Shown: positions 1 through 58,709, counted from the first letter of the stretch. The stretch: DNA of 64,000 nt from Bugula neritina (GCA_964035545.1 OZ037767.1:31636628-31700627), one strand, 5' to 3'. Made by a program: numbers and translations. Notes: generated by a model from the letters alone, not told the origin.

Positions 1-310
1 GCGCTGCCGCTGTGATTGCTGCCGCTGTGACTGCTGCCCGCTTGCTATTCTGTAGATATACAAATGTCCCTTGAGAAGAATTATCAGTTTCAAATCAGCT
101 GCTAAATTAGAAGCTATACGTTCTGGTCACGATACTCGGGGTTGACGTCAGTCATGGGCTTTCACAACGTCATTGGATATTTCTGTACCTACTTCTCGGT
201 TACTGTGTTGATGTACTCACGCTTTCCTCCTCATTTCCTCCATTTCCTCTTTTGCTTTATCACTTCCTGTAGCATTTACTGTAAACCAACTCAATGTGTT
301 CATCTTTTAG

Positions 311-1138: not shown

Positions 1139-1312
1139 ACATAAATATATATATAATATATATAAATATATATATAAGATATATAATATATATAACATAT
1201 ATATAATACATATATGTTATATATACAGTATATATATATGTTATATATACAGTATATATATATGTTATATATACAGTATATATATATGTTATATATACAG
1301 TATATATACAGT
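1139..1312. repeat. TA-rich low-complexity repeat with ~24-bp period (tatatatatgttatatatacagta)
   Basis: Directly visible; it explains the Y/I-rich ORFs at 1122-1412. Confidence 0.9.
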
Positions 1313-3530: not shown

Positions 3531-4845
3531 ATGAACAAGCAAGCAGTGTGCATGGTCTGTACCCTTGTTCTCTGCTCTATCATTACGACCAGTTGGACTC
3601 AGTCATACGGCTACGGCTATGACTATGGGTACGGCTATGACTACTATGCGTCATATTTTGAGCATGAATGTTCTTTTCAAGACTATCAACGCCATGGAGT
3701 TTCGGATGCCTCCACGTGTTCAGCAAAACTATCCAGCCATATCGTTAATGTTGTATGCAATGGTAACCCGTTCATCAACAAGAGGGCATGTGAGCACTAA
3801 CTCTATATTTATAATGCAACTATAAATGTTGTGAGAAAATATGAAAATGTTGTAAATAACTTTCATTATTGTTTTCAGCATTGTGGAGGAAATTCTATCA
3901 AATATTTTACTAAAGGTCCTCATCTCGGGCAGAGGCTTAACTTGGCATTTCTCAAATTAATGGAGTCCCCGAATGTTTTAGCTAATAAAAGGACTCTATA
4001 AGCCAAATTTATGAAATTTATTATGATCCAAAGAGTTGTGATTCTGCATATTATAGCACGTAAAGCGACATTATTAACAAGCTCTTCCAAGCTGATTGAG
4101 AAAATTCAACTACAAATTCTTTCCTGTACAGTAATTACATGTGAGTTGTAAATGGCAAAAAGTCATCATGGAGTCTGGCATCTGGCAAACATGAAGTTTA
4201 ACTGCAGTTTTTAGGCAATAAACAGATTTAAAATGTAGGAAAATAAAAGACTTGAAGTTAGAAGAATTGATCAATGTTTGTTTAACACATATGCATGTCT
4301 TTCCTATTATAGTCGATGGTGATTCCAAGAGCCAACCAAAAGTTAGCCGAGACATCTTTGTGTCTAAGAATCACTCTAATGAGTTTTTTAATCCAAAGAG
4401 AAATGAGCATGAGATGTCTGCATATGGAGTAGTATGCGAGTGCTGCATAAACCCATGTACTATGAGCGAGATGCAGGCTTACTGTGCTAAGAAACGGAGA
4501 AGGCGATCTGCCCACCAGGGAAGTACTCCTATCTACACCAGATCTATGCTGGAAGAGTTTCAACAACTTACTTCTTCCTCTCCTTCTCTTAGTTTGCAAG
4601 ATTTAGCCCAGTCCCCATTGGTACAGGCATTAAACCAGCAGAAGATCAGAAACAGTCAGAGAGAAGGCAATTCCAAACGAGAAGACAACTCCTTTGAATA
4701 CAGCGACTCGACTGAAGTGCTACCAGAAGGCGTGGACAAATATAACCCTGATGAAACGACTAGCAGATCTCCTGGACAGAAACTTTTTACAAAAAAAAGT
4801 AGCATACTTCGTAGGATATGGCAAGCTCTCACTGAGAACTATTAA
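3531..4845 (+). CDS. Insulin-like peptide precursor 1 (mollusc MIP/Aplysia-insulin type, 8 Cys) with long C-terminal extension; exons 3531-3789, 4313-4845; 263 aa
   Basis: Signal peptide MNKQAVCMVCTLVLCSIITTSWT; B chain ..FEHEC..TCSAKLSSHIVNVVCNG..KR; phase-1 intron (T|gtgagc ... tattatag|TC); C peptide ending FFNPKR; A chain GVVCECCINPCTMSEMQAYC (CC-X3-C-X8-C plus extra Cys); KKRRRR, then extension. Confidence 0.93.
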
Positions 4846-6315
4846 AATGTTATATAAAAATCTCTTTAAAATCTTGTTTTGGAAAATTATTAAAATATTC
4901 TTTGTTCTTTGTTAAACTCATTTTTTTAAAAATTTAGTTTTGCACTTCAATCTCAGTTTTTGTTTTTTCTCAATTATTGCATTTATTCCCATAATTATTT
5001 AATATTATTTTAGCAAGTTGTAGCACATATACAGCGAATTATTGTTCAATCAATTTTGTTTGTACTACATATAGATTGCTATTTGCATTTGTTGTATTGT
5101 ATAAATTAAATAATATAGTAGATAATTGCTAGTAGACTATTTGTTAGAATTGTTTCTAATACTCATAATAACATCAATAGATAGAAAGTGATGACAACTC
5201 CATAGTTGTTTTTCACCCAGTGAATGTGAATTCTTGACTTCCACTAGTAGAATTTTCAACTTGACAAACTTTAAGTAACGCTTTGGTAGCTAATGCATTA
5301 TATTTTAGACTGCAAAAGGTCCTTTATTGCTCAGAGCTGGCGCCAGACATAGTCTACACTCTACTATATTGTAGACTCTAGGCAGCATATATAATATAAT
5401 ATGAGTTTACGTCAGCTAACTGGAGTAACTAGAAACTAAACTAAACACATCAAAAGCAAAGATTAAATATAAAAAAGAAAGCAAATACACTAATGAATTT
5501 TTCATGATAGGAAGACAACTTACACATAGTAGTGAATAAATACTAGCTATAGAATTAGTAAAATAATTCCTTGCATTTTTCAGTTTGCTAGCTAACCAAC
5601 TGTAACTTATAGGCCATAGGGCATAGTATGTAATATAATGTGTTGGAGTTAGCTTTCCTTACTTCTATGATTGTAAAATCATTAATATGTTTATTATGGT
5701 GCTTGTTGGAACTATAAGTAGTTGGTAGCAGCTACCCAGTTCCATAATCTTTTCTATATAGTCCAACAACTCAAAAATGCTTGAAATGCTTTGAGTATAC
5801 TAGTTAACATAGTGTACAAGATTGAGATTTCTAAAAATTAACTACAAGTCAGTTTTATTTCAATAGTTTAGCAGTTGCAAGCTATTGTAAAACAGTTCCA
5901 GTTCTTGAGAAGAAATTTTTTACACAGTTACTATTTATATGTGGTTACTATTTATACATGGTTACTATTCATACATGGTTACTATGTCATTACGACAATT
6001 TTTTATTCATATTTGCTTTCTCTGGTAACATCTTTTAAAAAAAAAAAATAATAATTAGAAAATAACTGAAATACTGCGAAGCCACAAAGCCACTGATAAG
6101 TGGTGGTCAATTAACTCAAAGAGGTCTGCAGGCCTTGTTATATATTAGCTAAACTGAATGAGCCCGGAGTAGATGTGAGCATTGCCTGCCCAAGTAATGA
6201 GATAAGGAGATGTCTATAGTATGATGTGTTGTGGTAGTACAGAAGAGTCACAGACACTTGGCAAGTAAACAAGTTGATTAGATCTCAGCACATTAACTTC
6301 ACTGAAAGACGACCA

Positions 6316-6323
6316 TATAAAAG
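6316..6323 (+). promoter_or_regulatory. Putative TATA box of ILP2 (TATAAAAG)
   Basis: Consensus TATA; Inr-like catcactt ~28 nt downstream; donor cat|gtgagt at 6386; acceptor tttcag at 6720 before ATG 6744. Confidence 0.6.
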
Positions 6324-6743
6324 CAGTCTGACCACCAGATAACATCACTTGTATCCACCCTAACATGCTGATGGACAGCACACATGTGAGTATGTCTTTT
6401 AGCAGCCGACAGTCTGCTTCATATTGAATATGGAAATAAAAATAGGTTTGAAAATTTGACTAATAGTTTGACTGTGAGTTATTGTAACAAAATTTGAAAT
6501 TGTTTAGGCCATCTTTGATCAGAGTAATAGAAGTTAATTGGGAAAGTTGTGAATCTGTCATAAGATACTGAATAGACAGAATATGTCAGGCATGCTTGGC
6601 TATGGGTGTAGTGTAGCTATTTGGTTACAAGTAGGCCTACTATATTATCATTATGCTGTTTATTATATCATATAATTTATATTCATTGTGGTATGTTATT
6701 CCACTTTTATTGAATTTCAGTTGTGAAGGCAGCATAGAGCGGA

Positions 6744-7533
6744 ATGTTCGTTAGGTGCTTGATATTACTGCACTGTGTACTTTCTGGTGTTGTCTCCCTT
6801 GAAAGAATATGCCATATAGATGATCGGTCTAACAAGGACCCCGGGCTATGTAGAAGGAGACTGCAGCTATATCTCTCCAGGATATGCAATGGAGACATAA
6901 CTCCAACCAAACGCAACCACTTCACAGGTACGCTTCACAACAGTATTGTTGGAAACTATGAAACTAAACTCTACTAGATGATTTATTGTTCATGTAGAAT
7001 CATGTGGCATTCTGAAATGCCAAGTTTTGAAAAACTGAATCAAAGCAAATCTAAGGAGATGTTTAGGATGATAAACAAACTGTTTATGGTACACAAAAAT
7101 CTAATTCGAATGACATATTGTTTATAATTCAGAGCAACTCAGTGAGAGCGAGCAGAATCCGGCTACAACAAATCCGATTTCCGGTATTTCTTCCAGCAGA
7201 GAAACAGCTAATGCCTTCTTAAACCATTCTAAACGACAGCAGGCTGAGAGTGACGATGCTGACATGTTTAGCGGCATAATCTGTGAGTGCTGCTTCCATC
7301 CATGTTCGGAATATGAGCTAAGTGAATATTGCGGCAGCAGGAGGCGGAGAAAGAGGTATACGAGCCAACAGATTGAAGAGTTTGAAGCTCAACTCAAATC
7401 GCTCCCAAAATATCCCACTTTTGAGCAAATGGCCGCCTCACCAGCTGTTCAAGCATTGAACAGGCAGAAGAGAATAAACGTGACGCAAAGAGATGAAGAT
7501 GAGACAGCAACGTCTGCATCTAAGTTCAGCTGA
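6744..7533 (+). CDS. Insulin-like peptide precursor 2; exons 6744-6927, 7133-7533; 194 aa
   Basis: Signal MFVRCLILLHCVLSGVVS; B chain LERIC..GLCRRRLQLYLSRICNG..KR; phase-1 intron G|gtacgc ... aattcag|AG; C peptide ..ANAFLNHSKR; A chain GIICECCFHPCSEYELSEYC; RRRRKR plus extension; AATAAA at 7741. Confidence 0.93.
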
Positions 7534-8524
7534 CTGAGTCATGTCTTCTGAGAAGGCGTGGCTATAACTTCCCCATATGAATACAAGTATGTCAAGTTCA
7601 GCATGACAAGTGTAGTATTGTCAGCTTTGTCATGCCTTCAAACATTGGATAAACAGTTGAGAAACAATTGAAAAAACAGCAGATCAAAGACAGCAGCTGA
7701 TAGACTAGCTTAATTATGTTGTGGTTAATGTCTAATAAGAAATAAACAACTTGTCAATAGAAAAACCTGTTTGTTTCTGTAATATATAACTACAAATATC
7801 TATTTGATTCACTGTATTGTAAGACTAATTATTCAGTTTAACTTTCTGAGTCTACAAATTAATAAGAAAAAAGTAAAACTTGTAAAATAAGAAAATATAG
7901 CTAAAAAAAGTTCACTTATAATTAACTGTAATGATTACATTAGATATATCAACATTGTAGTATAACATCGTAATAGCGTAATAAGAATATTCATATTATT
8001 ATGGTCATGTAGAAGCCATTAATTGACATTTATTTATGAAAGAAAAACATGAATAACAGCAAAAATTCTCTCCATCATTTTGAATACAATAATACTGATA
8101 TTTTATGTAAGTACTTGAAGACAACCAAATGCCAATTTCAATGTACTTCTACTTGCGGCAGTTCTTTCCCTATCAGTATTGACATCAGTGGGCTGACAAG
8201 AGAAGTTTAATTCCAATCTGGCAGCAACTTTAGTCTGGCAGCCAGCTGACACAATAGGATTTTCTTCAAGACACAATAGAGAGAGAAGGGGGGGGGAAGG
8301 GGTGTAGGGACTGGACTTTGATGTCACTCTCACGTGTGTACTCTCAGGCTCTTTCTTATCTCAGCTGCCAAAGGATATGCAATAACTCACAGCTCACAAA
8401 CCAGTGTTCAGATTTTTGTTTACTTCATGTTGGCCGCTGTGCTGTGATAAGAAGTTAAATACAAACCTCATATAAGTCAAACACCCTAAAATAGTTATGT
8501 AACAACAAGCTGCTAAACTCTGAA

Positions 8525-8625
8525 ATGTCTGTCTGTCTGTCCGCCCGTCTGTCTGTATGTCTGTCCATTTGTCTGTCCGTTCGTCTGTCCGTTCGTCCGT
8601 CCGTCTGCCTGTCTGTATGTATGTA

Positions 8626-8660
<35 letters not shown>

Positions 8661-8665
8661 TTGTG
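8525..8665. repeat. (CTGT)n-type tetranucleotide microsatellite
   Basis: Visible gtct/gtcc repeats. Confidence 0.9.
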
Positions 8666-10829
8666 TACAGAGGGACAATAACACTTTATCTATCTAGTTC
8701 TATCTGGTTCTATATACGCCGGAAGTCATGGTAGAAAATGACAGCTGACTAAGAAAGCAGCACCCATCAAGTCATCTTTGTGTCAATAAGACTTCCAGCT
8801 TGCCAAACTTGGCAGAATGTTATTGGATTTTTGTATTTGTCAGAGGCCCTTTTGAGGGTTCTACAGAGGCCTCTTTTAGGTAACTCATACAAGGCATGTG
8901 TTCACCATAGCCACCTCTTTCTCCTCCTAAATTCTGCCACATTGTTAACATTCTCACCCAGTCTGTAGACTGCTACTCTGCACTGTACTGCGTTGCATCT
9001 GTTTACATCAAAATATTTACATGTCATCATTGTTTAGCTGCCTTCCAGTATTTCACATGTTTGCAAGCTACTAAACTATTTTCAATGACAAAACAATGTA
9101 CACTTATTTCACCAGCTTCTGTCCAAGTAATGCAACTCCTATGCCTATGCCTGTGGTATTGGTATTAAAACAGAGGTATATATACAGCAACATCACCGCA
9201 TGTACAACTTCTGAACCCCAGGCTTTACTGCTGGAATATCTACATAACTGAAGACACAACTTATATCCACTAAACTTAGATCAGGTGTGAAGCAGATGCA
9301 GAAAGGGAGGAATTTGAATAGGTATTTTATTAAGAGGAAATCTACTGAATGCTCCCCCACACCCCCCCTCTCGCCCCCTCCCTCCTCCCCTTCTGTTGGA
9401 TTAGTCACCTCTGTATTTGCTGCTCTGTAGAAACCTAGGAGTACAAGCAGCTGCTAAATTGGCTAGACTGAGGTCCAAAACTTTAACATATTATGTTAAA
9501 TTGTTTGATTTTAACATTTAACCCATAGCAGCACTAACTGAAGGTTTCAACTTTTGATCCAATATTCTCAACAATTAATGTTCAAAGATTAATTAATTCT
9601 CTAAACTTCAACATAATATCTTGAAATTTCTTTATTCAAGTTTTTTCATAAAATCCATTCATCAGTTCAAATTTCTTAAAATATAATATGTAATATAAAA
9701 TATATAATACAATTCTAGAACAATATAAATATTATATTATTGTATTTTCACCAACATCAAACAGTGCTGGTATTAAATAACAGAACTTCAAATTTACAAC
9801 CATGTTCACTGAACCTAATTTTTCAAAAATTAGTATATCGGATGTGAAGGACCTAATTCTGCCATGAATTAGGTGAAATTAACGGGTAGGATTTGTTGTT
9901 TTATTACAAATTTTGCATTTTGCTTTAATTAAAATAATTTTCGGATAGTTAATTATAGTATAGTAGTATTCAATTTTAATAAATATTATAAAAGCTACAG
10001 CCAGAAGATTTATGATTATAAAGATTTCTACTTTTGTATCTACTTATATGTTATAGCGATTATTTAGCTTACTTAAAGATTCTAACAAGCTTTGTAAAAG
10101 CCAAGTCATTTGTTCATATAATATAGTTGAGTTTAAATGTTTAATTCCTATCAGATGGCAAATCTGATAGGAATTAATATGTTAATCAGATAAACTAATT
10201 ATGCCATTGAAAAGTTCAAATAACTATTAGCGAGTGAATTAAGAATTCCGTCACATACTTTTTATAAATGGGTATTTGGGAAATCCGGTAAGGAAATGAT
10301 AATCACTTTGATTCGAAACAATGTCTAGCATTTATGTATTGTTACATTATACTATATCACAATACAATGTCTAGCACTTGTGTGTTGTTACTTTGTATAC
10401 TATATTATAATACAATGCTGATTAAAGCACATGTATCAATAAAACAAATAAACTAACTTGCTACGAAAAGTGGCATGACAAGTTATAATATTAGTAACAG
10501 AATAAATTTGCAGCAGAATATTTTGATATTTGTCCTTTTCTACTGACAGTTAGTCTAAAGTTTAAACTAATAATTATTGTGAGTTGCAGGAGCATACAAC
10601 TCCATTATTGCACCAGCTTTACCAAAGTCACTATATTATATTACATTCAATTTACTTCACTACAAAAGCATCATTTTACTAAATTCTTCTCAAATCATAG
10701 TTTTGTATAAAATTAATAAACAAATGAATATAGCTATATTATAGTAAAAGTATTTGCTGTATTATATTGGCGGCGTAGCTATATTATAACAGCTAGTATT
10801 AAGGCTATGTTATATTGTCATACTTTCGT

Positions 10830-10967
10830 TATATTATATTATATTATATTATATTATACTATATTATATTATATTATATTATATTATATTATATTATATT
10901 ATATTATATTATATTATATTATATTATATTATATTATATTATATTATATTATATTATATTATATTAT
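10830..10967. repeat. (ATATT)n pentanucleotide microsatellite
   Basis: Visible. Confidence 0.95.
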
Positions 10968-11914
10968 AGTACATCTTCATAATGTATTATTATAAGATTT
11001 AGAGAATATTAAAAAACAATTAAACATAGATGTACTCTATTTTGAAATAATAACATTGAATAAACTTTGCTGTTACCGGAAAAATACCTGATTTCATACG
11101 TGTATTTGTATTACAGCAAAAAGGAATTACGAGTAGTACGTTCTTCTTGTCAATGACCGCTAAAGGAAACTAACCCTGTGTAAGGTCTTTTCAACTGAAC
11201 CAAGTTAGCTCATTTGAAACTTTATAAAGAATCATTAAAGACTTGGCTAGTTCTTTACTTACTTGAAGAAAATGCAAATCAGGACATTTTACAATATAAT
11301 TATATAGATATATAGTATGTGTATGAAACATATATTATATTGCATCTTCATCTCATATAGTTTATATATTTAACAGCATATTTCAAGTTCTTCTTTACCA
11401 TATAATTTGGGTATAGCTAAGCTAACATTTAGCTGCAGTAATTATACCCTTAGCTTCAAAGTGTAGCCAGTCTCGGGATCTTACTTAGCCTCAGAACCTG
11501 GTTACATAATATCTGCTTGCTCATTGGTCAACTTAGTGGTCTGTGTAACTGCAGAGGTCTCTGCAGCTACCATGTAAGCTTTCTAAATATATTATACGAG
11601 ACAAATCACTGTACACTGTCAACTATATTCTATTGTGTAAAGAGCAAAATTGTCTGTTATAATATTCTTTCAAGTGAAATTTACACTCAAGTAATTACTT
11701 CATAGAAACTGTATGAATCTTGACTTGAGCATAAACTGCACTATGTTTCACATAAAACTGTAGGCTGCCCAAAGAGCTTGAGCAAAACAATAAACTATAT
11801 TGAAGTAATTATTACAACTCCTTGTTTATTCTGTAAGGCTTGTGAGTAAATCCTTCAAGATTAAAATGTTATTTTGAAATTTAATATCCTAAGAAGGTCA
11901 TTTTACTTTTAGAA

Positions 11915-13192
11915 ATGAAATATGAATTTGCAATACTATTCTTGAGTGATAATAATTTGGTGTATGTTTGGAGGCACTTCTGCTGAAGAATACAAAGTGT
12001 GTAGTATCAAAGATTCCCCAACCCCAGAGGAATGTGTGGGGCGGAGGTTTTCAAACAGATTTATGCAATATGCAATGGAAACATATATTTCGCTGGCTCT
12101 CTGACCAGCCCAGGTAAACCAAATGTTCAGCCACATGCATCTCTGTAACTTCACTATAGCCAGAGTGGTATCTATACCAGCACTGCTAGCACTAGTTTGT
12201 ATGGCTGATGGTGAAGCTAAAGAGTTGTCTTCTATTGTGGCAAAGAAGCAACCATGACTGAATTCCCTTCTAGCTAACATCACCAATAGTCTTAGCTAAC
12301 AACCAAAACTAATAGTTAATACCCATAGCTAATAACCAAAACTAATACTTAATACCCATAGCCAATAACCAAAACTAATACTTAATACCCATAGCCAATA
12401 ACCAAAACTAATACTTAATACCCATAGCCAATAACCGCTAACAATAACTGACAACTAAATTAATAAAACAGAACTGATTTATTGCCACCACTTTATGATT
12501 ATGTATCAAGCTGAGACCTTCACTTCTGGTGTCAAAGATTTAGAGCAAGTGTTGTCACAAAATCTGTCACAATTGCTGTCACAATTTCTGTCGCAACTGT
12601 TGCCACGTGTTATAAAGTCAAGCTACATCTGTACAGATATTGTGTAGTTACTATAGACTAATGTCTGTAGAGGATTAAATATTTCTTTTTGTTGAGATTC
12701 GTGATGGTTTGTTTAAAACTGTGTTGGTGGTCTTTTATGTTAATGATCAAGTCTGTGCAAATATAATGGAATAATCTATAAAGAGTCATATTGACTGTGT
12801 TTATAGTAACATTCATACTTTCAGACCGGAAAGCAATTCAGCCCCAAGTATCTGATATTTCCTCCAATAGAAATGCTGCTAATTCGTTCCTAAGTCAATC
12901 AAAGCGCCAGTTTGAGTATTTGGAGGATGAGCGAGATGCCAGAATGATGGGGATCTACTGCGAGTGTTGCATCCGTACCTGTACCTTAGAGGAAAAGCAA
13001 GAGTATTGCGGCAGCAAGAGGCGGAGAAAGAGGTCAGCCAGCAAACTGGTCAAAAGGTTTGAAGCTCAACTAAAATCTCTTCCAAAATATCCTACTTTTG
13101 AGCAAATGGCCATCTCACCCGCTGTTCAAGCATTAAACAGGCAGAAAAGAATAAACGTGAGACACAAAGGGATGAAAATGAGACAGCAGTAA
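11915..13192 (+). pseudogene. Insulin-like peptide 3, frameshifted (probable pseudogene or assembly error); exons 11915-12113, 12825-13192
   Basis: The ATG 11915 frame stops at 11984. Removing one base near 11945 and adding one near 12015 restores MKYEFAILFLVIIIWCMFGGTSA-EEYKVCSIKD.PNPRGMCGAEVFKQIYAICNG, with donor G|gtaaac at 12114. The second exon has an intact A chain GIYCECCIRTCTLEEKQEYC. A further 2-nt insertion near 13160 shifts the tail relative to ILP2. Confidence 0.8.
12290..12435. repeat. 33-bp minisatellite in the ILP3 intron (atagccaataaccaaaactaatacttaataccc)
   Basis: ~4 visible copies. Confidence 0.9.
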
Positions 13193-13595
13193 TTGAACAA
13201 TTGAGTTCAGTTGACCAAACTATATCTGTTATGGTTGAGATATAAATACCAGTATTATGTTCCCTGACAAGTACATAGCTTATTTTGTATTTTTATTTAT
13301 TGTTTATAATAAAATTTCTAAGCATAACAAACATTGAGATCAGCTGAAAAAGAATACAAATAGAAACTTTTATAAGATTAAAAACTAAATGCCTTTGATG
13401 AGGTTCAATCAAACAATGCATATGCAAAAAATTGAGTTTATATTATTTGAAACTAAACAAAGGTGAAAAGTAAGTCGACAAATAGACACATGCATAACTT
13501 TAGCTCACAAGCACATGTAAAGTATCAAATACTTTTATTTAGCTTCTAGCAACCTCTCATTAACGGCATGATTTATAGAGTCATAATCAGTCTTA

Positions 13596-13888
13596 TTACC
13601 ATACAGAACTGGTGCTACCACACAGAGCTGGTGTTACCATGCAGAGCTGGTGTTACCATGCAGAGCTGGTGTTACCATACAGAACTATAAGTGTTACCAT
13701 ACAGAGCTAGTTTTTCCATACAGAGCTGGTGTTACCACACAGAGCTAGTGTTACCACACAGAGCTAGTGTTACCATACAGAACTGGCGTTATCATACAGA
13801 ACTGGTGTTACCACGCAGAGTTAGTGTTACCACACAGAGCTAGAGTTACCATACAGAACTGGTGTTATCATACAGAGTTAGTGTTACC
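13596..13888. repeat. ~19-bp minisatellite (gttaccatacagagctggt)
   Basis: ~15 visible copies. Confidence 0.9.
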
Positions 13889-15225
13889 AGGAAGGAAGGC
13901 CCGGATGACTTTGCACTCACTAACACTTTAATTCTTTTTCAATCTAGTTTTATGATAATTTTGTTTTAGAAATTGATTTTTCTATTACTAGTGCTTAATC
14001 GCAGATCGAAAGTTTTTAAAGAGTTATTTATTCAGTGTGTTTTTCATTTAGATGCTTGTATATTAGAACCTAATTATCTGATGCTTAATATCTAAAAATA
14101 GGTTATTTTGCGATATATTTGTAACAAATAAATAATTTAAATCTCTAACCAAACAAGTTTAGCCAAGAATGAGTGAGTTGTTTATTAGTTTAGCTGTTTT
14201 CTGAACTCTTAAAAGTTTACTCTTTGATGTTTTACACAGCAAATTAACGCAATTTTCCTAAAAGTTGCATAAAAAGAAAATATATTTTTACACAAAAGAA
14301 AAAGTTTTTGCTTATGAGACAAATTTTTTAGATTTCTGATAATAGAATTGCCTATGGATTGTCAGCTGAGTGTTCTCCCGTCTTTAGAAAACTGGTTGAA
14401 TCGCGTGGGAAGAAGCAATTACTCTTGATGTTTTCTCTACTGTAACTCAGTCTGTGCTAAAGTATGTAGGAAAACCAGCAGCTTAGACATAAAGTGAATA
14501 ACGCATGGGCTATAAAAAGCATGAAGTACAATCATCCTTATCATATTCCCACTTGATATTACGTAATTATCGTAAACTTGCTCTATTTTTGTGCTACTTT
14601 ACCTTATAAGATATTTATCAAGAGTGTCTTTTAATTAAAACAAGAATAGAATACAACATAATAATATGGTGTAATACAACATAATGTAATATAATATAAC
14701 ATAATGTAATATAATATAATGTAATGTAATATAATATAATGTAAAATATGATGACAATTAATAGACTCATTAATAATTAGGACTGCTGGGCGTATAGCAT
14801 GACAGAAGGTTAAACACCAGCAATTTTCCCCTCAGCTTCGAGGCTTTACATTTTAAAAAACACTGCCTGTCATTATCTTCACCACCTGTTATGAGCTGCA
14901 TGCAGTGACATAACCTTATATGTGTATCTGAATGTATTTATAAAGTAGCTGTACATTACTCTGCAGGCACAGGATCATACTCTACTGTGATATTTAGCTA
15001 TAATATTACAATAAAAAATAGAATACAATAAAATAAAACAATGCAAACTAATACAATATCATAATAAATTGCCAATAAAACATTTATCAAAATAAAATAT
15101 CTTTTTTTAAATGTTGAGCTCATTAAACATCCAAGAAGTAAACAGTCTAACACGTGTACGCTGTCCAAGACTTAGCTGATTTGCAATAGTTTATTGATTT
15201 GCTAATTCCTTTAGAGTTGCGTTAG

Positions 15226-15233
15226 TATAAAAG
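15226..15233 (+). promoter_or_regulatory. Putative TATA box of ILP4 (TATAAAAG)
   Basis: Consensus TATA ~370 bp upstream of the ATG, with a probable non-coding first exon (donor ~15350) and acceptor tttag at 15592. Confidence 0.55.
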
Positions 15234-15594
15234 CTTGAATCTTCACAACATACAACATTCATATGTAAAGAATAGCTGAAGACATACAGTTGAAGCGGAA
15301 GAAGAGACAGTGCGCACAGTCATTAACCGGCAGAGTTTATTAAAACAAGGTTGTTCAGTATAGTCATAATAACGTCAGCACATTATTCCGCATGTTGTAT
15401 GTTTGTGAAACATTTATATTGAACTGCAGCATTTAGTCGTTTTACCTGTAAAGCAGTTCAAATTAATTTGTTAGCAATATAAACCTCTAGTTATTTTTCT
15501 TCGATGCTCTTGTTTACATGTTTCACCAACTTGGTTTTTATTTCTTTGTTCTCTCAATACTTAAATATTTTGGTTTTGTTTTAAAAATTTAGAG

Positions 15595-16482
15595 ATGAAG
15601 GAGAAGACACTGGCCATCTTGTCTTTCCTCTGTACAATAATCACATTGAGCTTTGCCGGCTTTGAGCAGACGTGCTATATAGAGGCATATTACAGCAAAA
15701 GTGCCCAGTCCACACGCCATTGTTCTGCACGGTTGACCAACCGAGTAATGCAACTGTGTAACAACCAGCCATATATTAAAAAAAAAAGAGGTACTTAATG
15801 TATCTATTTAGTTGTTGTAAGTTCTAGCGATTACAGACATTACATAACACAGGAATAGCTTTTGTTCTTAATGTGGAAAACAATATTACCTTCACCTGTG
15901 ATTTTCATCGCTTGTTCCACAGGCTATTCTGGTCAAGGGGATGCCATGACATACGGCTTTGAAGACATTTTTCAGCAAGAGGAGAGCTCAAACATGCTTC
16001 TAAAGAGAAATAGAAGACAGATGAATAATCAGGGAATCGTCTGTGAATGCTGTATGAACTCGTGTAGTTTGAATGAATTACTGGAGTATTGTGCCACGAG
16101 ACGCAGGCGCAGATCAGTGAAACAGCCAAACTCTCCTTTTTATACCAAAGCCATGCTGAAAAACTTTACTGAGTTAGTATCTTCGGCCCATACTCTGAAG
16201 GATTTAGCTGAGTCTCCCTTCGTACAGGCTTTAAATCAGCAGAAAATTACAAACATACAGAGAGCAGGTAACTCTAAACGAGGCTCAGTTGGCTGGGAAC
16301 ACAATTCGAATGGCATGCAAGAAGCAAAAGACTCTACAGAAAATACAGCTGATTCATGGGTAGACTTAGGTCCTACTATGTTGCCAGGGAAAGGTAGCAC
16401 TGAGGCTGTGTGGGGTCATGATGAGACAGAAAAGGAGGAGAAGCGCTTAATGGATAAAATATGGAGCATTTTGTTCAATTAA
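15595..16482 (+). CDS. Insulin-like peptide precursor 4; exons 15595-15790, 15923-16482; 251 aa
   Basis: Signal MKEKTLAILSFLCTIITLSFA; B chain GFEQTC..HCSARLTNRVMQLCNN..KKKR; phase-1 intron G|gtactt ... ttccacag|GC; A chain GIVCECCMNSCSLNELLEYC; RRRRR plus extension. Confidence 0.93.
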
Positions 16483-17307
16483 AAAGCTAAAAGTGAGTCT
16501 TTACAAAGGTTGAGTGTTCAAGGTGGTGTCACACAAATCTATTGCACATTAGTTCAAGTGTGGACGCAGTTGAATAAAACTATATAAGCTTTGACTTTTC
16601 CATGCTATAATTTTAATATTTTATGTTATTTGTTTTATTAACATTTATTATGTTTGTTTTATTGCATTATAATATGTATTATGATGTATTGCATTAGTAA
16701 TTATTGTATTACTTTATTACTTTTACTGTATTGTATTATTTATTCTATCGTACCTGCCAACATATACTCAACATTCAACAGCAAATTCGTTGTTAAATTT
16801 GATTTTAATTTTTTTCCTGTTTCATATGTGTCAGTAATATTTCAGTGAAATAAAATATATCAATATAGTTTATACTTGTAATAATTAAATGCAGTTCGCA
16901 TGTGCTCCATAGAATTTACTTTGAACATAAAATGTGGTTTGGAGTCGTCTAATTTGTATTTATGAGCTTGAATATGCAATTTGGAGTCACCTGATCTCTA
17001 TTACATCTCTATTATTGATGGGCTTGGTGTTATTGATTTGACTTTATTAGTAGATGATTCACATTCTCTGCTATAATCAAATTCACTTTCTGATTAGTTT
17101 AAATAAGTTTTCTATGACTTTGTAATCACAACAGAGTGATGCAGTTTCCTATAAAGACAACTACGGTTTAAACTTTAAATGAACAGTCCATCAACTAACT
17201 TCACTAAACCAATAGATAACAAAATCAAATTGATCAAAAATTGTTGCAATGGATTAGCTGATAGCTTGTGAGAGTTTTGCCTTCAAGTAAATCACATTTA
17301 AAGCCGC

Positions 17308-17999: not shown

Positions 18000-18114
18000 C
18001 AAAGTAGCTGATTTGTCTCTCCACGCTGCTCTGTTTTGTTGAGCTAAGAAATTGCATAGCTTCACATGGCTTTACACACTAATGCAGTGTTTTTCAGCAA
18101 TTAACCTTTCATCT

Positions 18115-18330
18115 ACTGACACACAGTATACTGTCGTACACAGTACAAGGTGACACACAGTACAAGGCGGTTCACAGTACAAGGTGACAGTATACTGACA
18201 CACAGTACAAGTTGACACAAAGTACAAGGTGACACAAAGTACAAGGTGACACAAAGTACAAGGTGATGCACAGTACAAGGTGACAGTATACTGACACACA
18301 GTACCAGGTGACAGTATACTGACACACAGT
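18115..18330. repeat. Composite minisatellite (acacagtacaaggtg / acagtatactg)
   Basis: Visible; it explains the C/V-rich minus-strand ORFs. Confidence 0.85.
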
Positions 18331-19128
18331 AATTAGCAGCTGGACCTGCACATATATGCTTAAAAAGCATTAAGGGAAGATAACTCCAATCACTTGAAGG
18401 ACTGCTCCATACCATAATGCTGCAGCCAATTACCAACAAGTTTCTGTTTACTCAAAGTTTACATATAAACTACTTTCAACTAACTGGTCTCCCACTTTAA
18501 GAACCAAAAGTACTGGCAACCAGCTACTCAGCAGAAAACTTCAACCCCAAAGAAGTAACTTCTACAGGTACTCTAGGCAAGTAAAGGAAACACACATCTA
18601 CAGGTAGGTACTGTAAACAAACAACTACTAGTACAATAAATAGATTATGTAAATTTAACTGCAAGTGGTTTATTAATTAGACTTGCAGACAGTAACTGTG
18701 AGAGTTACTCTAAATTTAATACATTTTATCATGTCCCTACCTGCAGACTTGCACCAGTAACTTGAACAAGTAACTCGCTCAAAATTTTCAAACTCTATAG
18801 TGTATAATTGTGGCATATACATCAATAAATAGGTTTCTAAGGAATTATTGTTGTTCTGTAGTTACTGCTTTTTCATAGTCCCTGCTTTTATATTGTACCA
18901 TGAAATATCTTTATTTAGGATAAATCTAATAGGAGTACTACGACATCATATAGTATGTACTATAGCATAATATATATATATTATATATAATACTTTATGT
19001 GATGTATAACATATAGGTAAGTAATATGACATTACAATGAATATAATGAAAATATATTTGTTATTATAACATATTATTATAGCTGATAGTACAACATTAT
19101 ATAATATATGTAAAATAATTGGTGTTTT

Positions 19129-19302
19129 GACATAGCATATGATATATAACATAGCATATGATATATAACATAGCATATGATATATGACATAGCATATGAT
19201 ATATAACATAGCATATGATATATAACATAGCATATGATATATGACATAGCATATGATATATAACATAGCATATGATATATAACATAGCATATGATATATA
19301 AC
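19129..19302. repeat. 19-bp minisatellite (atagcatatgatatataac)
   Basis: ~9 visible copies. Confidence 0.9.
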
Positions 19303-20348
19303 ATACATGCACAGTCTATTTATATTTAGTGTAGTATAGGTCATGTGATATATTGTATAATAGTATACGATATATTTAGATTTTATAAAGGACAAAACTT
19401 TAATGAATTGGACTTTTGCCAAAACCTAGCATACCTTGGAAGATTAGGAGAATTTTACTTATAAAAGGTTCAGTGACAATAACTGTTGAGATAACTTTAT
19501 GATAACTTTACCATAACTTTATGATATTGTTAGACTGATCAGCTATGTTCCTATAACAGAAGTGTATTACAGTAAAGTTTGAAATTTAAAGAAATGATAA
19601 GGTCGGCATCATATTATTATAAAGATTTGTGACAAAAACTGGTGGTTATCCTATTCTACCCAGACTGTCCTCGGACTAAGGTCTTTGCTGCGGGCCTGTA
19701 AGTTCGCAATGTGTGGTGTAATAGTGTCTTCCTTCTATTTTTTACTTCATGTTGAACAATGTTTGCGCTGCCTCACCTGTCCTTCAACCCATTAAAGCAA
19801 AGTTACGAAAATAAATAACAGCAATGACTCTTCAATGTAACTGCATAACATGATCAACAGTGCCAACTCCTCATCAGATTTAGCCAGCGTGTTGCTCATT
19901 TTTTTATAAAGCTGAAGAGTAAACAAGTTTTTGTTGTTCCAAGGAACAATACTATTTACTTTGTCGGTTACGATATGACTAAGAATCCAGGACGAGTAGT
20001 TACCCCCCCCCCCTGTGTCACAGCGCGCAGTGTGTCACAGCACGAAGTCTGTCACAACATGCAGTGTGTCATAACACGCAGTCTGTCACAACATGCAGTG
20101 TGTCCAGTGAGTAGTGTGAAGCTGAACGTCTGATAACTTGACCTCTTTACTTCCTGTTGGCCTAGTCAATCTCTTAGTGGAGGTCAAGGCAAGCTACAGA
20201 CTGACTTTACTCAGGGATATGATTTGCCTTGTCTAAGATCTTTTTCTGATAGCTTGTAGCAATACTCTGTAGGCTAACTGCTGACTATTATTTACTAGCT
20301 GCTGCCTGTCTTGCTATGACGGTCTTCTGCTGGTTTTGTAGACAGAAG

Positions 20349-21515
20349 ATGAAGTGGAAGGAGGTATTATGTTTCATGTACTTCACACTGACGAGTGCCA
20401 GCTACGGAGGGTTTGAGCACACCTGTGCCTACAATGACTACATGAACGCATCACCATCTCGTAGAGTTACCTGTGGCAGAAAGATCCCAATCTTTGTCTT
20501 TCATTTGTGTAACGGAGCCGTCAATGTAAAGAAAAGAGGTGAGCTTGTTGTTAGCAAAACAGGCAAAAATTGTCTTGCGTTTACAGACTTTCTTTGGGGT
20601 TGTTAGTATCAAATATCTGTGAATTAACATAATTTTCATCAAATAGTTGGATAGTGAAAAAAGTTGTAATAAAAACAGACTTGCTATATTTATTTACTAT
20701 TAAATCAAGTACGAATAAACAAATGGGCATGTACTCGAACAGCTTTTTGTAACCCAAACTTACACCAAGTTGGTTTAGATAACTGTTAAATATCAATACA
20801 AGCAAGTTGTTAGTAAAGTTTCACTTAGATATATAACTTGAATAAGCTTATATAGAAGCGGATGTTGGAAAATCCCAGTCAATGATTCATTGATGTGAAA
20901 ATCTATTTGGTGGTTACAAATTGCTTTCAGTAGACATGGAATGTGGCATATGTTATATAATGAGTGAAAGAGGAAAGCAGGTTAACCACAAAGGCCGGAG
21001 GGAGGGGTAAGGAATGATAGCAATCTGTTTGTTGATAACATGTTCATTCTTATTTGGCAGCTGTTTCACCTGAGCCAAGTCAAGTTCAACGACCAGTATT
21101 CATCAAAGGACAAACACACAAACCTACTAATTCACTCTCTAAATTTACTACTTTACACAACATATTCCAGCTGAGGAAGACAGCAAACACTTTTCTTTCT
21201 TTAAAAAAGAGGGCCATACGTTTTTATGACGACCATGAATTAGATCTGACCCAAGGGATTGTGTGCGAATGCTGTATTCACAGTTGTACAATACTGGAGT
21301 ACCAGGAGTATTGCGTTCCGACAGGGCAGCGAAGGGCAGCGAGAAGGAAGAGAGAGACTTTCTATACGGACACACTTTTGACTGAGTTTGAAGAAAGATT
21401 TGACAACTCCGAAACACCATCCTTAATTGAAATGGCGCAAACACCTCTATTTAGAGCAATGAACTCTCAGAAGATTTATAACTTGAGAAACTCTTTAACT
21501 GATGGTGGAGCGTAG
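20349..21515 (+). CDS. Insulin-like peptide precursor 5; exons 20349-20538, 21061-21515; 214 aa
   Basis: Signal MKWKEVLCFMYFTLTSASYG; B chain GFEHTC..TCGRKIPIFVFHLCNG..KKR; phase-1 intron G|gtgagc ... tttggcag|CT; C peptide ..ANTFLSLKKR; A chain GIVCECCIHSCTILEYQEYC; RRKR plus extension. Confidence 0.93.
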
Positions 21516-21989
21516 AGGTCGTTGATTATTCTAACAGTCTCTAAGATAGAACTGGAAGGCTCGTCTACTTGTCTGAATTAAATATTAAATTAGAAGGTTT
21601 TTCTAGTAAGAAAACCACCAATATCAGTGTGTGCAGTAGCTTATAGAATAACCTCTTTCAACTATATTTAGGTTTATTTATCTATTTATTCGTTTATTTA
21701 TTTTTTAAGTTATACATCAAGTGTTTATTTACTATATTTATGTAGTATACAGTGAGCATTAAACTACATGTCATATGCAGTGTTTTACCACGACTAAGTT
21801 TAGGTTCTAATAGGTAATTTCATCACATGTTAATGTATGCAACATTAACTTAAAACTGCCATATATATATTGCACACTGTATTATTTTTAATCGAAAAAA
21901 CTATTTTATATTATTTATTTTCAATTCATTTTTAAATTGTAGATTTTTTAATGTTTCAATAAATGATGTATTCTTTCACCAAACTTTTT

Positions 21990-22275
21990 ACCAAATATAA
22001 GCTTTACCAAACAATTATATTATATACAATATCCAATATAAACTCTACCAAACAATTATATTATATACAATATGCAATATAAACTTTACCAAGCAATTAT
22101 ATTATATACAATATCCAATATAAACTACATACCAAGCAATTATATTATATACAATATTCAATATAAACTTTACCAAACAATCATATTATATACAATATTT
22201 AATATAAACTTTACCAAACAATCATATTATATACAATATCCAATATAAACTTTACCAAATAATTATATTATGCAA
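21990..22275. repeat. ~39-bp AT-rich minisatellite
   Basis: Unit tttaccaaacaattatattatatacaatatccaatataaac, ~7 copies. Confidence 0.85.
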
Positions 22276-23814
22276 TACTAAATAATATAGATTATACCAA
22301 ATGATCATCAGTTTACGATTTTGGTATGAATTACGAGGCCTTTAGTTAACCCTTTGCACCTTGGAAGTACACTGCTAAAAAAACTTAGTAAAACAAGAAA
22401 GTGTACACCCCTGAGACAAGGTCAGCATGCTGGCTCTCTGGTCACATGACTGCTGCCGGATATGTTTTCTTTTCTAATTAACATGCAAACAGTCTGCAGC
22501 TCCAAAATAATATTTTTTCCACGTGTGTTTATGCAAAAACAAAGGATCTAAAATCAAAATATTTTCTAGAATCTGGGATCCTTTTCCCCTGAGCTGTGGA
22601 AATGAGCTATATATATATATAGCTTTATTCAATATTTATAAGTTCAAAATGCTGTACCATATTATATTATTATACTGTATTATGTTCTACTACACTATAA
22701 TATTATAAGTTTAAAATGATGTACCATATTATATTATTATACTGTATTATGTTCTACTACACTATAATATTATAAGTTTAAAATGATGCACCATATTATA
22801 TCATAATAGTGTATTATGTTATATTATATTATACTATACTGTATTATATTATACCATATTATTATATTATTACTCTATATACTCTGGAGAAGGGATAACC
22901 TTACTATTCTATTGTCACTGTTATTGAAGTTGAATAGTTTTAGATAGTTGAACAGTAGCTGTACTGATTACATAATAATTTGTTTACCGTGTTAGACAGT
23001 TTATCGGCAGCTCACAAACTGGTTAGACTACAGACTAATTTAGGTAGACACTACGCAAGTTGCTGGTGACTTCATCACTAATCAACATGTTTACAAATAT
23101 GATAATTACATAGAAAAATATAATAATTATACGAATTCATGCTTTTGAGCCACATTTTGTATACAGAGACAATAAAACAAATAAGCTGCAAACATTGTTT
23201 AGTAGGCAGTTTGTCTGTGGCAGCTGTCTGTGGTAGTGAAATGAACATTTGGTGGTTAGTATAATGGGAATTAGAGTCAAATTTACCTGCCCATTATTGT
23301 AGGTTCACTCTCCACACAGGATTATAATTTTCTTTCCTCTCTTTCTAATAAGTATATCCCTGCTATAATAAGCTTTACATGGTAACCATTCATTATGTTT
23401 GCAAGAAATCTTAGGACTTGTAGTTTAGCCTTTTTTGTAGAACAAAATTTGGTTGTGGACATTTTGGCAGGAATGAATTAACTTCATTTGCTTTTTATGA
23501 CAAATTACTAAGCTTTTTGGCTTGCTTTGAGTCATAGCTTATATGTTGAAGCTTGTATCCAACAAGCCACTGGTGATGTGTACTCAGTTTCTAGCATGAT
23601 ACTTGGTCCGTCTATATAATTTGAGAGGGCAACTCTCAGGAAGTAACAAAAGTAGTTATAATAGAAATCAATACCTGATATGATAACTCTCAATGAGTGA
23701 ATTTATTCAATACATTTAATGAATCACAATTACAATATCCATCTATGTACACTAACTTGTGTCAATGTTCGTCATCTTGAAAATTGTATATATTTACAGC
23801 AATAAAAATGTCAA

Positions 23815-24094
23815 ATTCTATCTGCCAGAACTAGTATGCCAGGTTCTATCTGCTAGAACTAGTATGTCAGGTTCTATCTGCCAGGACTAGTATGTCAGGT
23901 TCTATCTGCCAGGACTAGTATGTCAGGTTCTATCTGCCAGGACTAGTATGTCAGGTTCTATCTGCCAGAACAAGTATGTCAGGTTCTATCTGCCAGGACT
24001 AGTATGCCAGGTTCTATCTGCCAGGACTAGTATGTCAGGTTCTATCTGCCAGAACAAGTATGTCAGGTTCTATCTGCCAGGACTAGTATGTCAG
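23815..24094. repeat. 28-bp minisatellite (ggttctatctgccaggactagtatgtca)
   Basis: ~10 visible copies. Confidence 0.9.
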
Positions 24095-24992
24095 TGCTGT
24101 GTCTTCCATTGAGCATTTTCTGGAATACTGCAACTATGACTTATATATGTAGAAATTGTCTGCCCTATTCAATGTTGCCAGTTATTTCATTGGTGGAAAA
24201 ACTAAGAAATTAATGAAGTTCAATATTTCATATTTTAGTTACAAGTTGCGACATGCATTGCTTTAGTTTGCCGAAATTGTTATGGAAATACAAGATGTGC
24301 AGACAATCTGTAGTTTATCTTCGGTGTTATAATACAACATATATAACATAAGTAGATGATAAAACATATACTATAAGACAACATAAAAATAAAAGACTGA
24401 TATAACAAAATTATTTCTTGTTTTGTAAAATGGTGCCACTAAAAGGACTTCAAAGTGCAAAGCTTCTGTGAGACAAAACTAATATTATCCCAAACCTCTT
24501 AATTTTACACATTTTAGTTTAAAATACAAACTCAGTTGTTAGTTAACATAGTGTAGAGTTAGTAAAGAGTTAGTGTAGAGTCAATATAGGACATTTTGGC
24601 AGCGCTGTCATCCCTACACACCTCCACACATGCTGATATCCAATCAACTGGATAATTAAGTTGCTGGCAGCATCTAAGACTAAAAATAATATCTGGAGAG
24701 TATGCGTAGCATGTGGCATTGCTGACACTCAAGCAGCAGCCAAATTACTGGCAGCAGCTAAATTACTAGCAGCAAAATTGTAACGACTCAACTCATTGTG
24801 TACAATTCCTAAATTCTACGACCTGCATATGTACGACCACATTCATCTTAATAATGTTTGTGTTGGGCCTGCTAACTTCGTCTAATATGAGAAGTGTAAC
24901 TTAGTTGGCACATATCACCCTTTGTCACTAATGCCATAATAACACTTCTTACACAATTATATAATAACTCGTAATGAACGATTAACTAATCC

Positions 24993-25094
24993 TGATTGGA
25001 TAAGAGAAGGTGTGGCCCCGCCCCTTCTCATTGATTGATTTCATCCGTGAGAGGTGGGCTCACATTCCTCACTGGGAAAAAACTATATAAATAG
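24993..25094 (+). promoter_or_regulatory. Putative core promoter of ILP6: inverted CCAAT (gattgg ~24994), GC box (ccccgcccc ~25016), TATA (tatataaata ~25084)
   Basis: Canonical order and spacing, followed by a non-coding exon ending aaaag|gtaagg (~25260) and acceptor ttgtag at 25435 before ATG 25443. Confidence 0.6.
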
Positions 25095-25442
25095 CTGCGA
25101 GTCTTGGAGTCTGTAGCATTAAAATCCCTGCTCATGCCTAGACGTGCTCGAAAAATGCACACAGCAGTTTCCTTGCAATAATCTATATTATATTCTGCTG
25201 GAATAAGATAGCAACTGGACTTTGCTTGTTGAATTTTCAAGTTCCAACTGTAATAAAAGGTAAGGAATGAAAATTATATAAATTTCATTAAAATGTATTT
25301 TTGAAGTAAATTAGAAGCATATTCTCACAGAAAATTCTACGCATAAATTGAGATTTCAAACATTAGTCAATTTTAATATACATTGTAGATATAAAATAAA
25401 TATGTGTATAGGATAATATTTATTATACATTGTAGATATAAT

Positions 25443-26411
25443 ATGGATATGAGTATGGGGTACTACCTACTTATGCTGATGTTGTGCTGCCTGTTGGTGG
25501 AAGAAGTTGAAGCTGACTTTGAGCATACTTGTGCTAGCGATGACTTCGCTAGAAGCGGAGCTTACCATAGCTGTGGCTCCAGGCTGACCTCGCTAGTGCT
25601 GAGTAAATGTGACGGGAATCCCTACCTAGGCAACAGAAGTAAGTTTCTGTTCACTGACTTTACTTACTCTTCTTTAGAACTCGACTGAAGAAGAGTTGGT
25701 GTAGTGAATAAACAACTACTGCAAGAATAAAGTTTTTGTTATTGATATTTTTAAATTTATTATCAGAATATATAGGAACTTATACTGAAAGCTTGTTTAC
25801 ATAAATGCTTACAACGTAAATTTATATTTGCAGGAAAAAGAGACCTTGAAAAAATATCACTAACAATGGAATCCGCAAACTCCTACCTTCGACCTAAAAG
25901 AAACTACGAGTATGTCGCAACTGGCATGGAAGTGGGCATAATCTGCGAATGCTGCGTCAACACCTGCACGATACGGGAACTCGATCAATACTGTGAGAAC
26001 AAGCGCAAGAAGAGATCAGTGAGAGAGATTCTGACTCCCACACAAGAGAGCAAGACCTACTTCTCAGAGAAAGATGTGGAGAAGTTCTACGAAGAGTTGA
26101 AAGAGTTGCCAGAGTCGAAGGAAAACGAAGAAGAAAGTCTGCCCACGAGCCTTGAAGAGTACGAGACCATCGTGGCACTCGACAACATCAAGCGTAAGAA
26201 CATCGCGATGAAGCAGATGTATTTATCACAAGCAAATGAAGTCAATGGTGCCGTTATGTCAACCAATAGCAAAACCAGACAAAATACTAACTCGAATAAA
26301 CAGGCTAATATTAGGATTTTCTCGACAATCATATCTGGTATGCCACCATCAGACCACAAACACAGACACAAACACGACAAGCGCCATTTAAAACACAGGG
26401 AGAAAGTATGA
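25443..26411 (+). CDS. Insulin-like peptide precursor 6; exons 25443-25638, 25834-26411; 257 aa
   Basis: Signal MDMSMGYYLLMLMLCCLLVEEVEA; B chain DFEHTC..SCGSRLTSLVLSKCDG..RRKR; phase-1 intron A|gtaagt ... tttgcag|GA; C peptide ..ANSYLRPKR; A chain GIICECCVNTCTIRELDQYC; KRKKR plus extension with a His/Lys/Arg-rich tail. Confidence 0.93.

Positions 26412-30672: not shown

Positions 30673-53506
<22,834 letters not shown>

Positions 53507-55094: not shown

Positions 55095-58709
<3,615 letters not shown>

Follow-up and report, generated by a model that had tools for sequence, protein, structure and literature searches.

Six insulin-like peptide genes lie in a row on one strand

The sequence under study is a 64,000-nucleotide stretch of Bugula neritina DNA (GCA_964035545.1 OZ037767.1:31636628-31700627), hereafter the window, in which positions 3531-26411 hold six insulin-like peptide (ILP) genes in a row on the plus strand (g1 to g6). 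A six-frame scan of these 64 kb with the A-chain pattern CCx3Cx8C yielded seven matches. Six are on the plus strand, at 4441, 7288, 12965, 16048, 21270, and 25950, and all of them read G(I/V)xCECCx3Cx8C and end in YC, exactly as the original prediction had described them; the seventh, on the minus strand at 52352, stood without surrounding ILP context. The same pattern recurs in four paralogues elsewhere in the genome. The exons of the six genes are as follows.

3531-3789 (+): g1 (BnILP-F orthologue), signal peptide, Tyr/Gly-rich stretch, and B chain (FEHEC...); its junction, ...NKRA|F|D..., agrees with a cDNA-derived peptide (PMC4990251, Table 2)
4313-4845 (+): g1, C-peptide, A chain, KKRRRR site, 117-aa extension, and stop; PF00049, 29.8 bits
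6744-6927 (+): g2 (BnILP-D orthologue), signal peptide and B chain
7133-7533 (+): g2, C-peptide, A chain, RRRRKR site, and extension; A-chain pattern, PF00049, and P0003
11922-12113 (+): g3 (BnILP-B orthologue), signal peptide and B chain, disrupted
12825-13192 (+): g3, C-peptide, A chain, and extension, open frame; A-chain pattern and PF00049
15595-15790 (+): g4, signal peptide and B chain; three-Cys B chain and splice frame
15923-16482 (+): g4, C-peptide, A chain, RRRRR site, and 124-aa extension; A-chain pattern and PF00049
20349-20538 (+): g5, signal peptide and B chain; three-Cys B chain and splice frame
21061-21515 (+): g5, long C-peptide, A chain, RRKR site, and extension; A-chain pattern and PF00049
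25443-25638 (+): g6 (BnILP-A orthologue; P0004, 257 aa), signal peptide and B chain
25834-26411 (+): g6, C-peptide, A chain, KRKKR site, and extension with a His/Lys-rich tail; PF00049 and a Watersipora orthologue

The Pfam Insulin profile PF00049 matches the A exons, searched singly, with E values of 1e-6 to 1e-3. Scores were 29.8 bits for g1, 29.5 for g4, 23.9 for g2, and 23.7 for g6, with g3 (22.3) and g5 (20.1) slightly under the curated cutoff of 23 bits when scored, like all window genes, exon by exon. The sister-lineage proteins P0002 to P0005 served as full-length stand-ins, and one of them, the cDNA precursor P0004, reached 27.3 bits over profile positions 3 to 81. The exon 5′ of each A exon encodes a hydrophobic N terminus or signal peptide followed by a three-Cys B chain, which starts with FE(H/Q)xC in g1, g4, g5, and g6 (4/6), as had been noted. 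The claim of three Cys in every B chain held for g1, g2, g4, g5, and g6 and failed in part for g3, whose B exon is not open and whose Cys are read across a frameshift. B chains carry a Cx11C pair in g2, g3 (in its third piece), g4, g5, and g6, and a Cx12C pair in g1, in both lineages compared below. An extra Cys pair, made up of the A-chain C-E-CC and a Cys near the B-chain N terminus, is found in 6/6 genes, in g3 again across the frameshift. Judged by these sequence features, the window genes are four-disulfide (MIP-type) ILPs with a predicted Cys pairing.

All six introns are in phase 1 with GT..AG borders, and their splice sites are kept in the second lineage; phase-1 pairs are the only donor/acceptor pairs that preserve the frame. 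The proposed architecture, i.e., a signal plus B-chain exon, a phase-1 intron, and an exon for the C-peptide, A chain, and extension, is thus recovered in the six genes. A phase-1 intron in the C region is common to 10/10 paralogues, four of them confirmed by cDNA. The intact models of g1, g2, g4, g5, and g6 are open over 263, 194, 251, 214, and 257 aa, respectively. In 6/6 window genes, KR or KKR borders the C region on either side, toward the B chain and toward the A chain; these C regions measure 22 to 50 aa. An R/K-rich furin-type site follows every A chain, with an extension of 50 to 135 aa behind it. In addition, a pyrimidine-rich AG located 2 to 25 nt 5′ of the ATG in 6/6 genes fits an intron in the 5′ untranslated region; the canonical insulin gene plan consists of three exons, with introns in the 5′ untranslated region and the C-peptide (PMC5062327). 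Ahead of the g1 B chain, the pro-region carries a Tyr/Gly/Asp repeat at 3600-3650 (SYGYGYDYGYGYDYYAS), which is kept in the sister lineage.

Published cDNAs and a sister assembly corroborate the gene models

Six ILP transcripts of this species, all with four predicted disulfides and with their chains printed, were reported by Wong et al. 2016 in PLoS One (PMC4990251; GenBank KX095881-KX095886). Inspection against the peptides in Table 2 of that paper equates g1 with BnILP-F, g2 with BnILP-D, g3 with BnILP-B, and g6 with BnILP-A. The printed peptides cross four predicted splice junctions and agree with them, confirming those junctions by cDNAs of a sister lineage, and the BnILP-A precursor P0004 is 257 aa long, the length of the g6 model, extension included. 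g4 and g5 are absent from this cDNA set, and the GenBank annotation of the draft-genome contigs has no call for g4. One ILP was localized to the larval apical organ by in situ hybridization (PMC4990251); its naming in that paper is inconsistent (BnILP1/BnILP-A in the text, BnILP-B in the figure legend).

The entire cluster is collinear with contigs of the assembly GCA_010799875.2 at 80 to 94% DNA identity, with an intron divergence (K) of 0.12 to 0.19. On the grounds of these values, the window lineage is placed as a sibling lineage within the Bugula neritina complex, apart from GCA_010799875.2. In the contigs of the latter, g1 to g4 follow in the same order downstream of a 3HCDH (CRYL1-like) gene, in keeping with the CRYL1 neighbor expected from the original prediction. 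The corresponding stretch of the window is the following.

18-1164 (+): collinear with the sister assembly, where this position is taken by the 3′ end of a 3HCDH (CRYL1-like) gene preceding g1

The g3 exon also retrieved the NCBI proteins EB796_001291 and EB796_025307 [Bugula neritina], which are 88% and 64% identical, and the only relative that databases returned for the g5 exon, at 93% identity, sits on a JGI metagenome contig labeled AY690838, an accession cited in bryozoan papers that include the description of the B. neritina mitochondrial genome. On this evidence, a molluscan origin of the window was rejected. DNA contigs of three sequencing runs were compared with the window over 10900-16600. 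Those of run X1 are identical to the window and those of X2 and X3 are ~91% identical; run contigs gave no depth over g4. X2 and X3 represent a second lineage under the same organism label and diverge from the window by ~9% over 12204-14302, consistent with cryptic species inside the named taxon.

Five genes form a Bugula-lineage expansion and the sixth is of an older type

The genome itself holds ten genes of the subfamily at three loci, and no second copy of the cluster. BnILP-E lies on contig 6 and BnILP-C on contig 7, which carries two further paralogues as well. The contig 7 genes constitute a second tandem cluster (G000 C7:11211809-11223548, minus strand; loci L004 and L006) of three ILP genes, namely the BnILP-C orthologue and two unpublished paralogues, with the same exon plan and the same extension. 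The window copies are mutually 23 to 39% identical. Assembly duplicates, already held unlikely in the original prediction, were ruled out by this divergence, by the same gene order in an independent assembly, and by the lack of a duplicate cluster in the genome.

A tree of second exons gave good support to the grouping of g1 with g4, of g2 with g3, and of the contig 7 trio. An exhaustive profile search collected 236 relatives, ~45 of them with the extension, and all named ones among these are bryozoan, including four Watersipora subatra proteins. With relatives added to the tree, g1 to g5 and the contig 7 genes formed a Bugula-only clade (94/94), nested in a wider clade (100/99) with a Watersipora gene as a further member. 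g6 grouped with XP_067946537 of Watersipora, to which it is 33% identical along the entire precursor, and the contig 6 gene grouped with a different Watersipora protein. From these groupings it follows that g1 to g5 arose in an expansion specific to the Bugula lineage, which is also the source of the three contig 7 genes, and that g6 is an older bryozoan ILP type (ILP-A) adjoining it. The single local expansion first proposed therefore stands for g1 to g5, together with the contig 7 trio, and is lost for g6, which sides with the Watersipora ILP-A type. This split comes close to the condition under which the original prediction would fail, yet all ten genes fall within one bryozoan family.

The extension behind the A chain is conserved in bryozoans

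The extension keeps an invariant A..K..N (e.g., ALNQQKxxN) in 10/10 paralogues and in Watersipora, and the motif ..ALNQQKxxN../..NKxxNI.. was found only in proteins whose named members are bryozoan. At the sequence level, the extension is thus conserved across cheilostome bryozoans, and it may function either as another bioactive peptide or in sorting, as a domain of the precursor. Within it, one tract is shared by two neighboring genes.

7393-7510 (+): g2 extension tract, 85 to 90% DNA-identical to g3 (~13060-13170), with a synonymous divergence (dS) of 0.39 and saturation elsewhere

Both genes encode PTFEQ in the window and PNFEQ on the haplotype L003 of the sister assembly, and g2 has PTFEQ and g3 PNFEQ on L002. 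This is probably a gene-conversion tract; conversion fits better than stronger constraint because dS is low and the residue is shared within the haplotype in the window and L003, though not in L002. His/Lys/Arg-rich (HKHRHKH-like) C-terminal tails were observed in g6 (26330-26408), the contig 6 gene (L005), P0017, and P0008 to P0011; such tails end ILP-A-type and ILP-E-type precursors of Bugula, Watersipora, and unnamed relatives.

The mature B chain of g4 is hypervariable between haplotypes

Nonsynonymous divergence (dN), dS, and their ratio omega were calculated against the sister lineage. Omega of the mature B chain is 0.08 in g5 and 0.19 in g6 (both conservative), intermediate in g2, and ~1 in g1, and that of the g4 A chain is ~1.15, with 0.36 in the g4 extension. 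By these rates, g2, g5, and g6 are under purifying selection, and the mature chains of g1, and especially of g4, evolve at or above the neutral rate. The copies had been proposed to be subfunctionalized hormones rather than dosage copies. This is plausible, and selection regimes do differ strongly within the cluster (omega of ~0.1 to 0.2 in g5 and g6, as against ~1 for the mature g1 and g4 chains). The most variable part of the locus is confined to one segment.

15661-15790 (+): g4 hypervariable segment, i.e., the mature B chain, with 58 to 72% nucleotide identity among three haplotypes

The three haplotypes are the window itself, L002:14504-14632, and L003:19571-19696, the latter two from one assembly. 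The signal peptide, intron, and extension of g4 are 86 to 100% identical across them (22/22 signal-peptide residues between the window and L003, 18/22 between the window and L002), whereas blastn cannot align the mature B chain. In this segment, dN among the three haplotypes reaches 0.42 to 0.52, against an intron K of 0.12, and the variable block runs from the signal-cleavage site to the end of the exon. Nonsynonymous change affected 36/99 sites versus 14/129 in the adjacent intron (Fisher P = 5e-6), and the three B-chain Cys, a Leu, and PY are kept in all three alleles, the frames of which are all open. The mature chains thus differ by ~50% between haplotypes and the signal peptide and introns barely do, a pattern otherwise described, among insulins, for venom insulins. 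The simplest reading of these sequences is that g4 encodes an insulin-like ligand under diversifying selection between haplotypes.

The strongest competitor of diversifying selection, which we rate as a real contender somewhat short of even, is that the divergence reflects old allelic lineages that have persisted through chance or through balancing selection, sequence exchange with a paralogue outside the sample, or positional nonorthology. Elevated dS in the segment (0.32 to 0.64 versus 0.23 in the signal peptide) leaves room for old alleles or unsampled exchange, omega there (0.65 to 1.6) is not significantly >1, and the DNA 5′ of g4 is a mosaic among haplotypes. However, none of the loci compared, the A-chain exons of all ten paralogues included, emerged as a donor of the g4 B chain, a comparison in which the B exons of the contig 6 and contig 7 genes were not located, and each haplotype has a single g4 at the same position. 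The coincidence of the block with the mature chain, the residues retained in the three open alleles, and the excess of nonsynonymous over intron change likewise speak for diversifying selection on g4. A metagenome scan for further g4 alleles returned one weak, unrelated locus only.

Two lesions interrupt the B-chain exon of g3

The signal peptide of g3 has TGA at 11943-11945 (codon 8), where the sister lineage has GGA, and a run of C in its B chain (12016-12019) is shortened by a 1-nt deletion, with C4 here and C5 in the sister lineage. In the other B. neritina assembly, neither site is damaged in either haplotype. With each break marked X, the B exon reads MNLQYYS X VIIIWCMFGGTSAEEYKVCSIKD X FPNPRGMCG.... 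The second exon is open, with an omega of 0.24 versus the sister lineage; therefore, either the loss is recent or a null allele is segregating. By its sequence, g3 is probably a recent pseudogene or null allele in this genome.

It is unlikely that all six genes are functional and that the g3 lesions are assembly errors or one individual's null allele rather than a fixed loss. The intact splice sites and A exon of g3, the latter with its low omega, and an orthologue that is open and expressed in the sister lineage would suit this explanation, as would the fact that one lesion is a C4/C5 homopolymer difference. Nevertheless, the two lesions are independent and fall within 75 nt, and GGA to TGA is a substitution, not a length error. 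Furthermore, a gapless X1 DNA contig (word depth of ~120, equal to that of its neighbors) matches the assembly without differences over 10978-12360, although X1 is possibly the assembly's own sample. Disruption of g3 in this genome remains the better account.

C-peptide ends resemble propeptides recognized by vitamin K-dependent carboxylase

The C-peptides end in a common pattern, [IV]F-x5-[AS]-x2-[FYL][LF]-...-KR, shown first for g5.

21144-21212 (+): g5 C-peptide end, with I-17, F-16, A-10, F-7, L-6, and KKR at -3 to -1, in register with the carboxylase determinants
4336-4401 (+): g1, equivalent C-peptide end
7171-7236 (+): g2, equivalent C-peptide end
12842-12907 (+): g3, equivalent C-peptide end
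15943-16008 (+): g4, equivalent C-peptide end
25836-25901 (+): g6, equivalent C-peptide end

In carboxylase propeptides, the structural determinants comprise an invariant Phe-16 within a hydrophobic stretch (-17 to -15), Ala or Gly at -10, and a hydrophobic pair at -7/-6 (PMC13187478). g1 and g4 keep IF..S..(FF/LL), and g2, g3, and g6 have Ser at -16, where Phe is invariant in known substrates. The strict motif was present in 52/118 ILP relatives versus 0.7 expected from shuffles. A profile of sequences selected by the motif is partly circular, so an unselected profile was used as the test, built from the 40 residues 5′ of the A chain in 101 relatives, mostly unnamed sequences. Searched against 177,635 PDB sequences, it gave six matches, five of which were vitamin K-dependent propeptides: protein S (two entries, E = 0.005), osteocalcin (E = 0.03), PRGP2, and protein C. 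g6, g5, g2, and g3 scored 9 to 19 bits with this profile, against ≤6.2 bits for shuffles, and g1 and g4 did not rise above controls. A profile of the eleven bryozoan C-peptide ends matched only p53 in the PDB, by chance. The genome contains a carboxylase gene, with HTTM and VKGC lumenal-domain exons together at G000 C2:15957416-15965948 (minus strand).

These data are suggestive and do not amount to proof. Tentatively, and with more doubt than conviction, we propose that the C-peptides of bryozoan and many other four-disulfide ILPs end in a working carboxylase site and that the A chain that follows, with the invariant Glu of C-E-CC and an acidic N-terminal stretch, would be gamma-carboxylated. 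Gamma-carboxyglutamate (Gla) is proven in the Conus venom insulins Con-Ins G1 and G3 (PMC6372279); these two are the only known precedent for Gla in insulins, and endogenous ILPs are not known to carry it. If true, endogenous spiralian insulins would be an unrecognized class of vitamin K-dependent hormones, and the Gla of cone snail venom insulins would be explained. Given this pattern, mass spectrometry could test directly whether invertebrate insulins are gamma-carboxylated.

Maturation model and overall interpretation

Each gene would comprise a putative noncoding first exon, the signal plus B-chain exon, the phase-1 intron at the B/C junction, and the exon for the C-peptide, A chain, and extension. 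In the model that we favor, the signal peptide would be removed and four disulfides would form, prohormone convertases would cut the KR sites flanking the C-peptide, and a furin-type cut at the R-rich site after the A chain would free the extension. This would yield a hormone of two chains, whose receptor is presumably a kinase of the insulin-receptor type.

Taken together, the region is very probably the main ILP locus of a bryozoan of the B. neritina complex, with six tandem four-disulfide MIP-type genes on the insulin gene plan, of which g3 is lesioned, g6 is of the old type, and g1 to g5 are the expansion. Several points weigh against this interpretation. Branch supports at the deeper nodes of the tree are moderate, and several branches are long. 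The processing sites, disulfide pairing, and receptor are deduced from family knowledge, and an AlphaFold2 model of the sister precursor P0004, from a four-row alignment, had low confidence (pLDDT of 51). The cDNAs derive from the sister lineage, whose introns differ by 12 to 19%; the three runs belong to one study, none is recorded as RNA, and over 10900-16600 they gave only DNA contigs. For g3, one lesion is a homopolymer length difference, and X1 lends weak independent support since it is perhaps the assembly's own sample.

It is improbable that the products are IGF-like single-chain growth factors that retain the C region, with the extension as an E domain that furin would cleave off along the constitutive pathway. 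The long extensions behind an R-rich furin-type site right after every A chain would agree with such a design, and the contig 6 paralogue has no dibasic site between the C region and the A chain. In contrast, dibasic sites flank the C regions of all six window genes rather than leaving the short uncleaved C domain that, with an E domain, marks the IGF type. Their C regions (22 to 50 aa) are of insulin-like, not IGF-like, length, and B-C-A processing was predicted by Wong et al. (PMC4990251). Least probable of all is that several copies, notably g4 and g1, are decaying or unexpressed and that an omega of ~1 in their mature chains, together with the missing g4 transcript (PMC4990251) and gene call, reflects relaxed constraint, given that the g4 frame is open in three very different haplotypes that keep all eight Cys and the GIVCECC / EL.EYC core, that its signal peptide (22/22 versus L003, 18/22 versus L002) and extension (omega of 0.36) are conserved, that g1 has a cDNA (BnILP-F), and that a nonsynonymous rate above the neutral intron rate is impossible from relaxed constraint alone.

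Other features of the window

Toward the 3′ end, the window contains exons of a PhyH-domain gene (57224-57823, plus strand) and dynein heavy chain exons (D6 P-loop, AAA lid, and C-terminal domain; 59289-63451, minus strand). A Pfam search of the other open reading frames of the window gave no matches besides these two. The coding-looking frames at 2372-2960, 8500-8730, 13749-13928, and 23756-24210 are tandem or low-complexity repeats, not genes; such repeats include CLSV repeats and a ~28-codon minisatellite.

Comparison with known insulin systems

In itself, the cluster is ordinary endocrine genomics, and the family was known from cDNAs. BnILP-A to BnILP-F belong to the same family, with g1, g2, g3, and g6 being the same genes in the sister lineage, and share with the window genes the four predicted disulfides, the B-C-A organization, and the dibasic sites. 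That study (PMC4990251) is confined to the transcriptome, with neither genomic arrangement nor intron positions, and the extension is not discussed there. Its set lacks g4, g5, and the two contig 7 paralogues, and ILP-B is intact there and broken here. New over the cDNAs are therefore the genomic map, two unpublished paralogues (g4 and g5), and a lineage-specific gene loss.

To IGF-type ligands, the sole likeness is the E-like extension behind a furin-type site. Vitamin K-dependent propeptides (those of protein S, osteocalcin, PRGP2, protein C, prothrombin, and factor X) resemble the ILP C-peptide ends in their hydrophobic pair (Phe at -16), their small residue at -10, the hydrophobic positions -7 and -6, and a basic cleavage site. 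Profile searches with ILP C-peptide ends recover these propeptides from the full set of PDB sequences. Those propeptides are N-terminal, before the Gla domain, whereas the ILP version is a C-peptide between two hormone chains.

Cone snail con-insulins, like g4, combine a conserved signal peptide with hypervariable A and B chains (PMC5062327, PMC6372279), and they have the same three-exon gene plan as the window genes. Unlike cone snails, Bugula is without a venom apparatus, and g4 varies between haplotypes or sibling lineages rather than between prey-specialized species. We thus take the likeness to be one of evolutionary pattern only and do not class g4 as a venom insulin.

Molluscan insulin-related peptides (Lymnaea MIPs, Aplysia insulin, and oyster cgMIP123/cgMIP4), from another phylum, share with the window genes the extra Cys pair formed by the A-chain C-E-CC and an N-terminal B-chain Cys. 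MIP genes are also tandemly duplicated in the oyster (PMC8149454). The FExxC start, regarded from the outset as molluscan in type, is indeed common to g1, g4, g5, and g6 and to the Con-Ins Im2-like protein of Crassostrea virginica (P0015). This mollusc protein, the one precursor examined, ends right after the A chain, whereas the bryozoan ILPs carry an extension.

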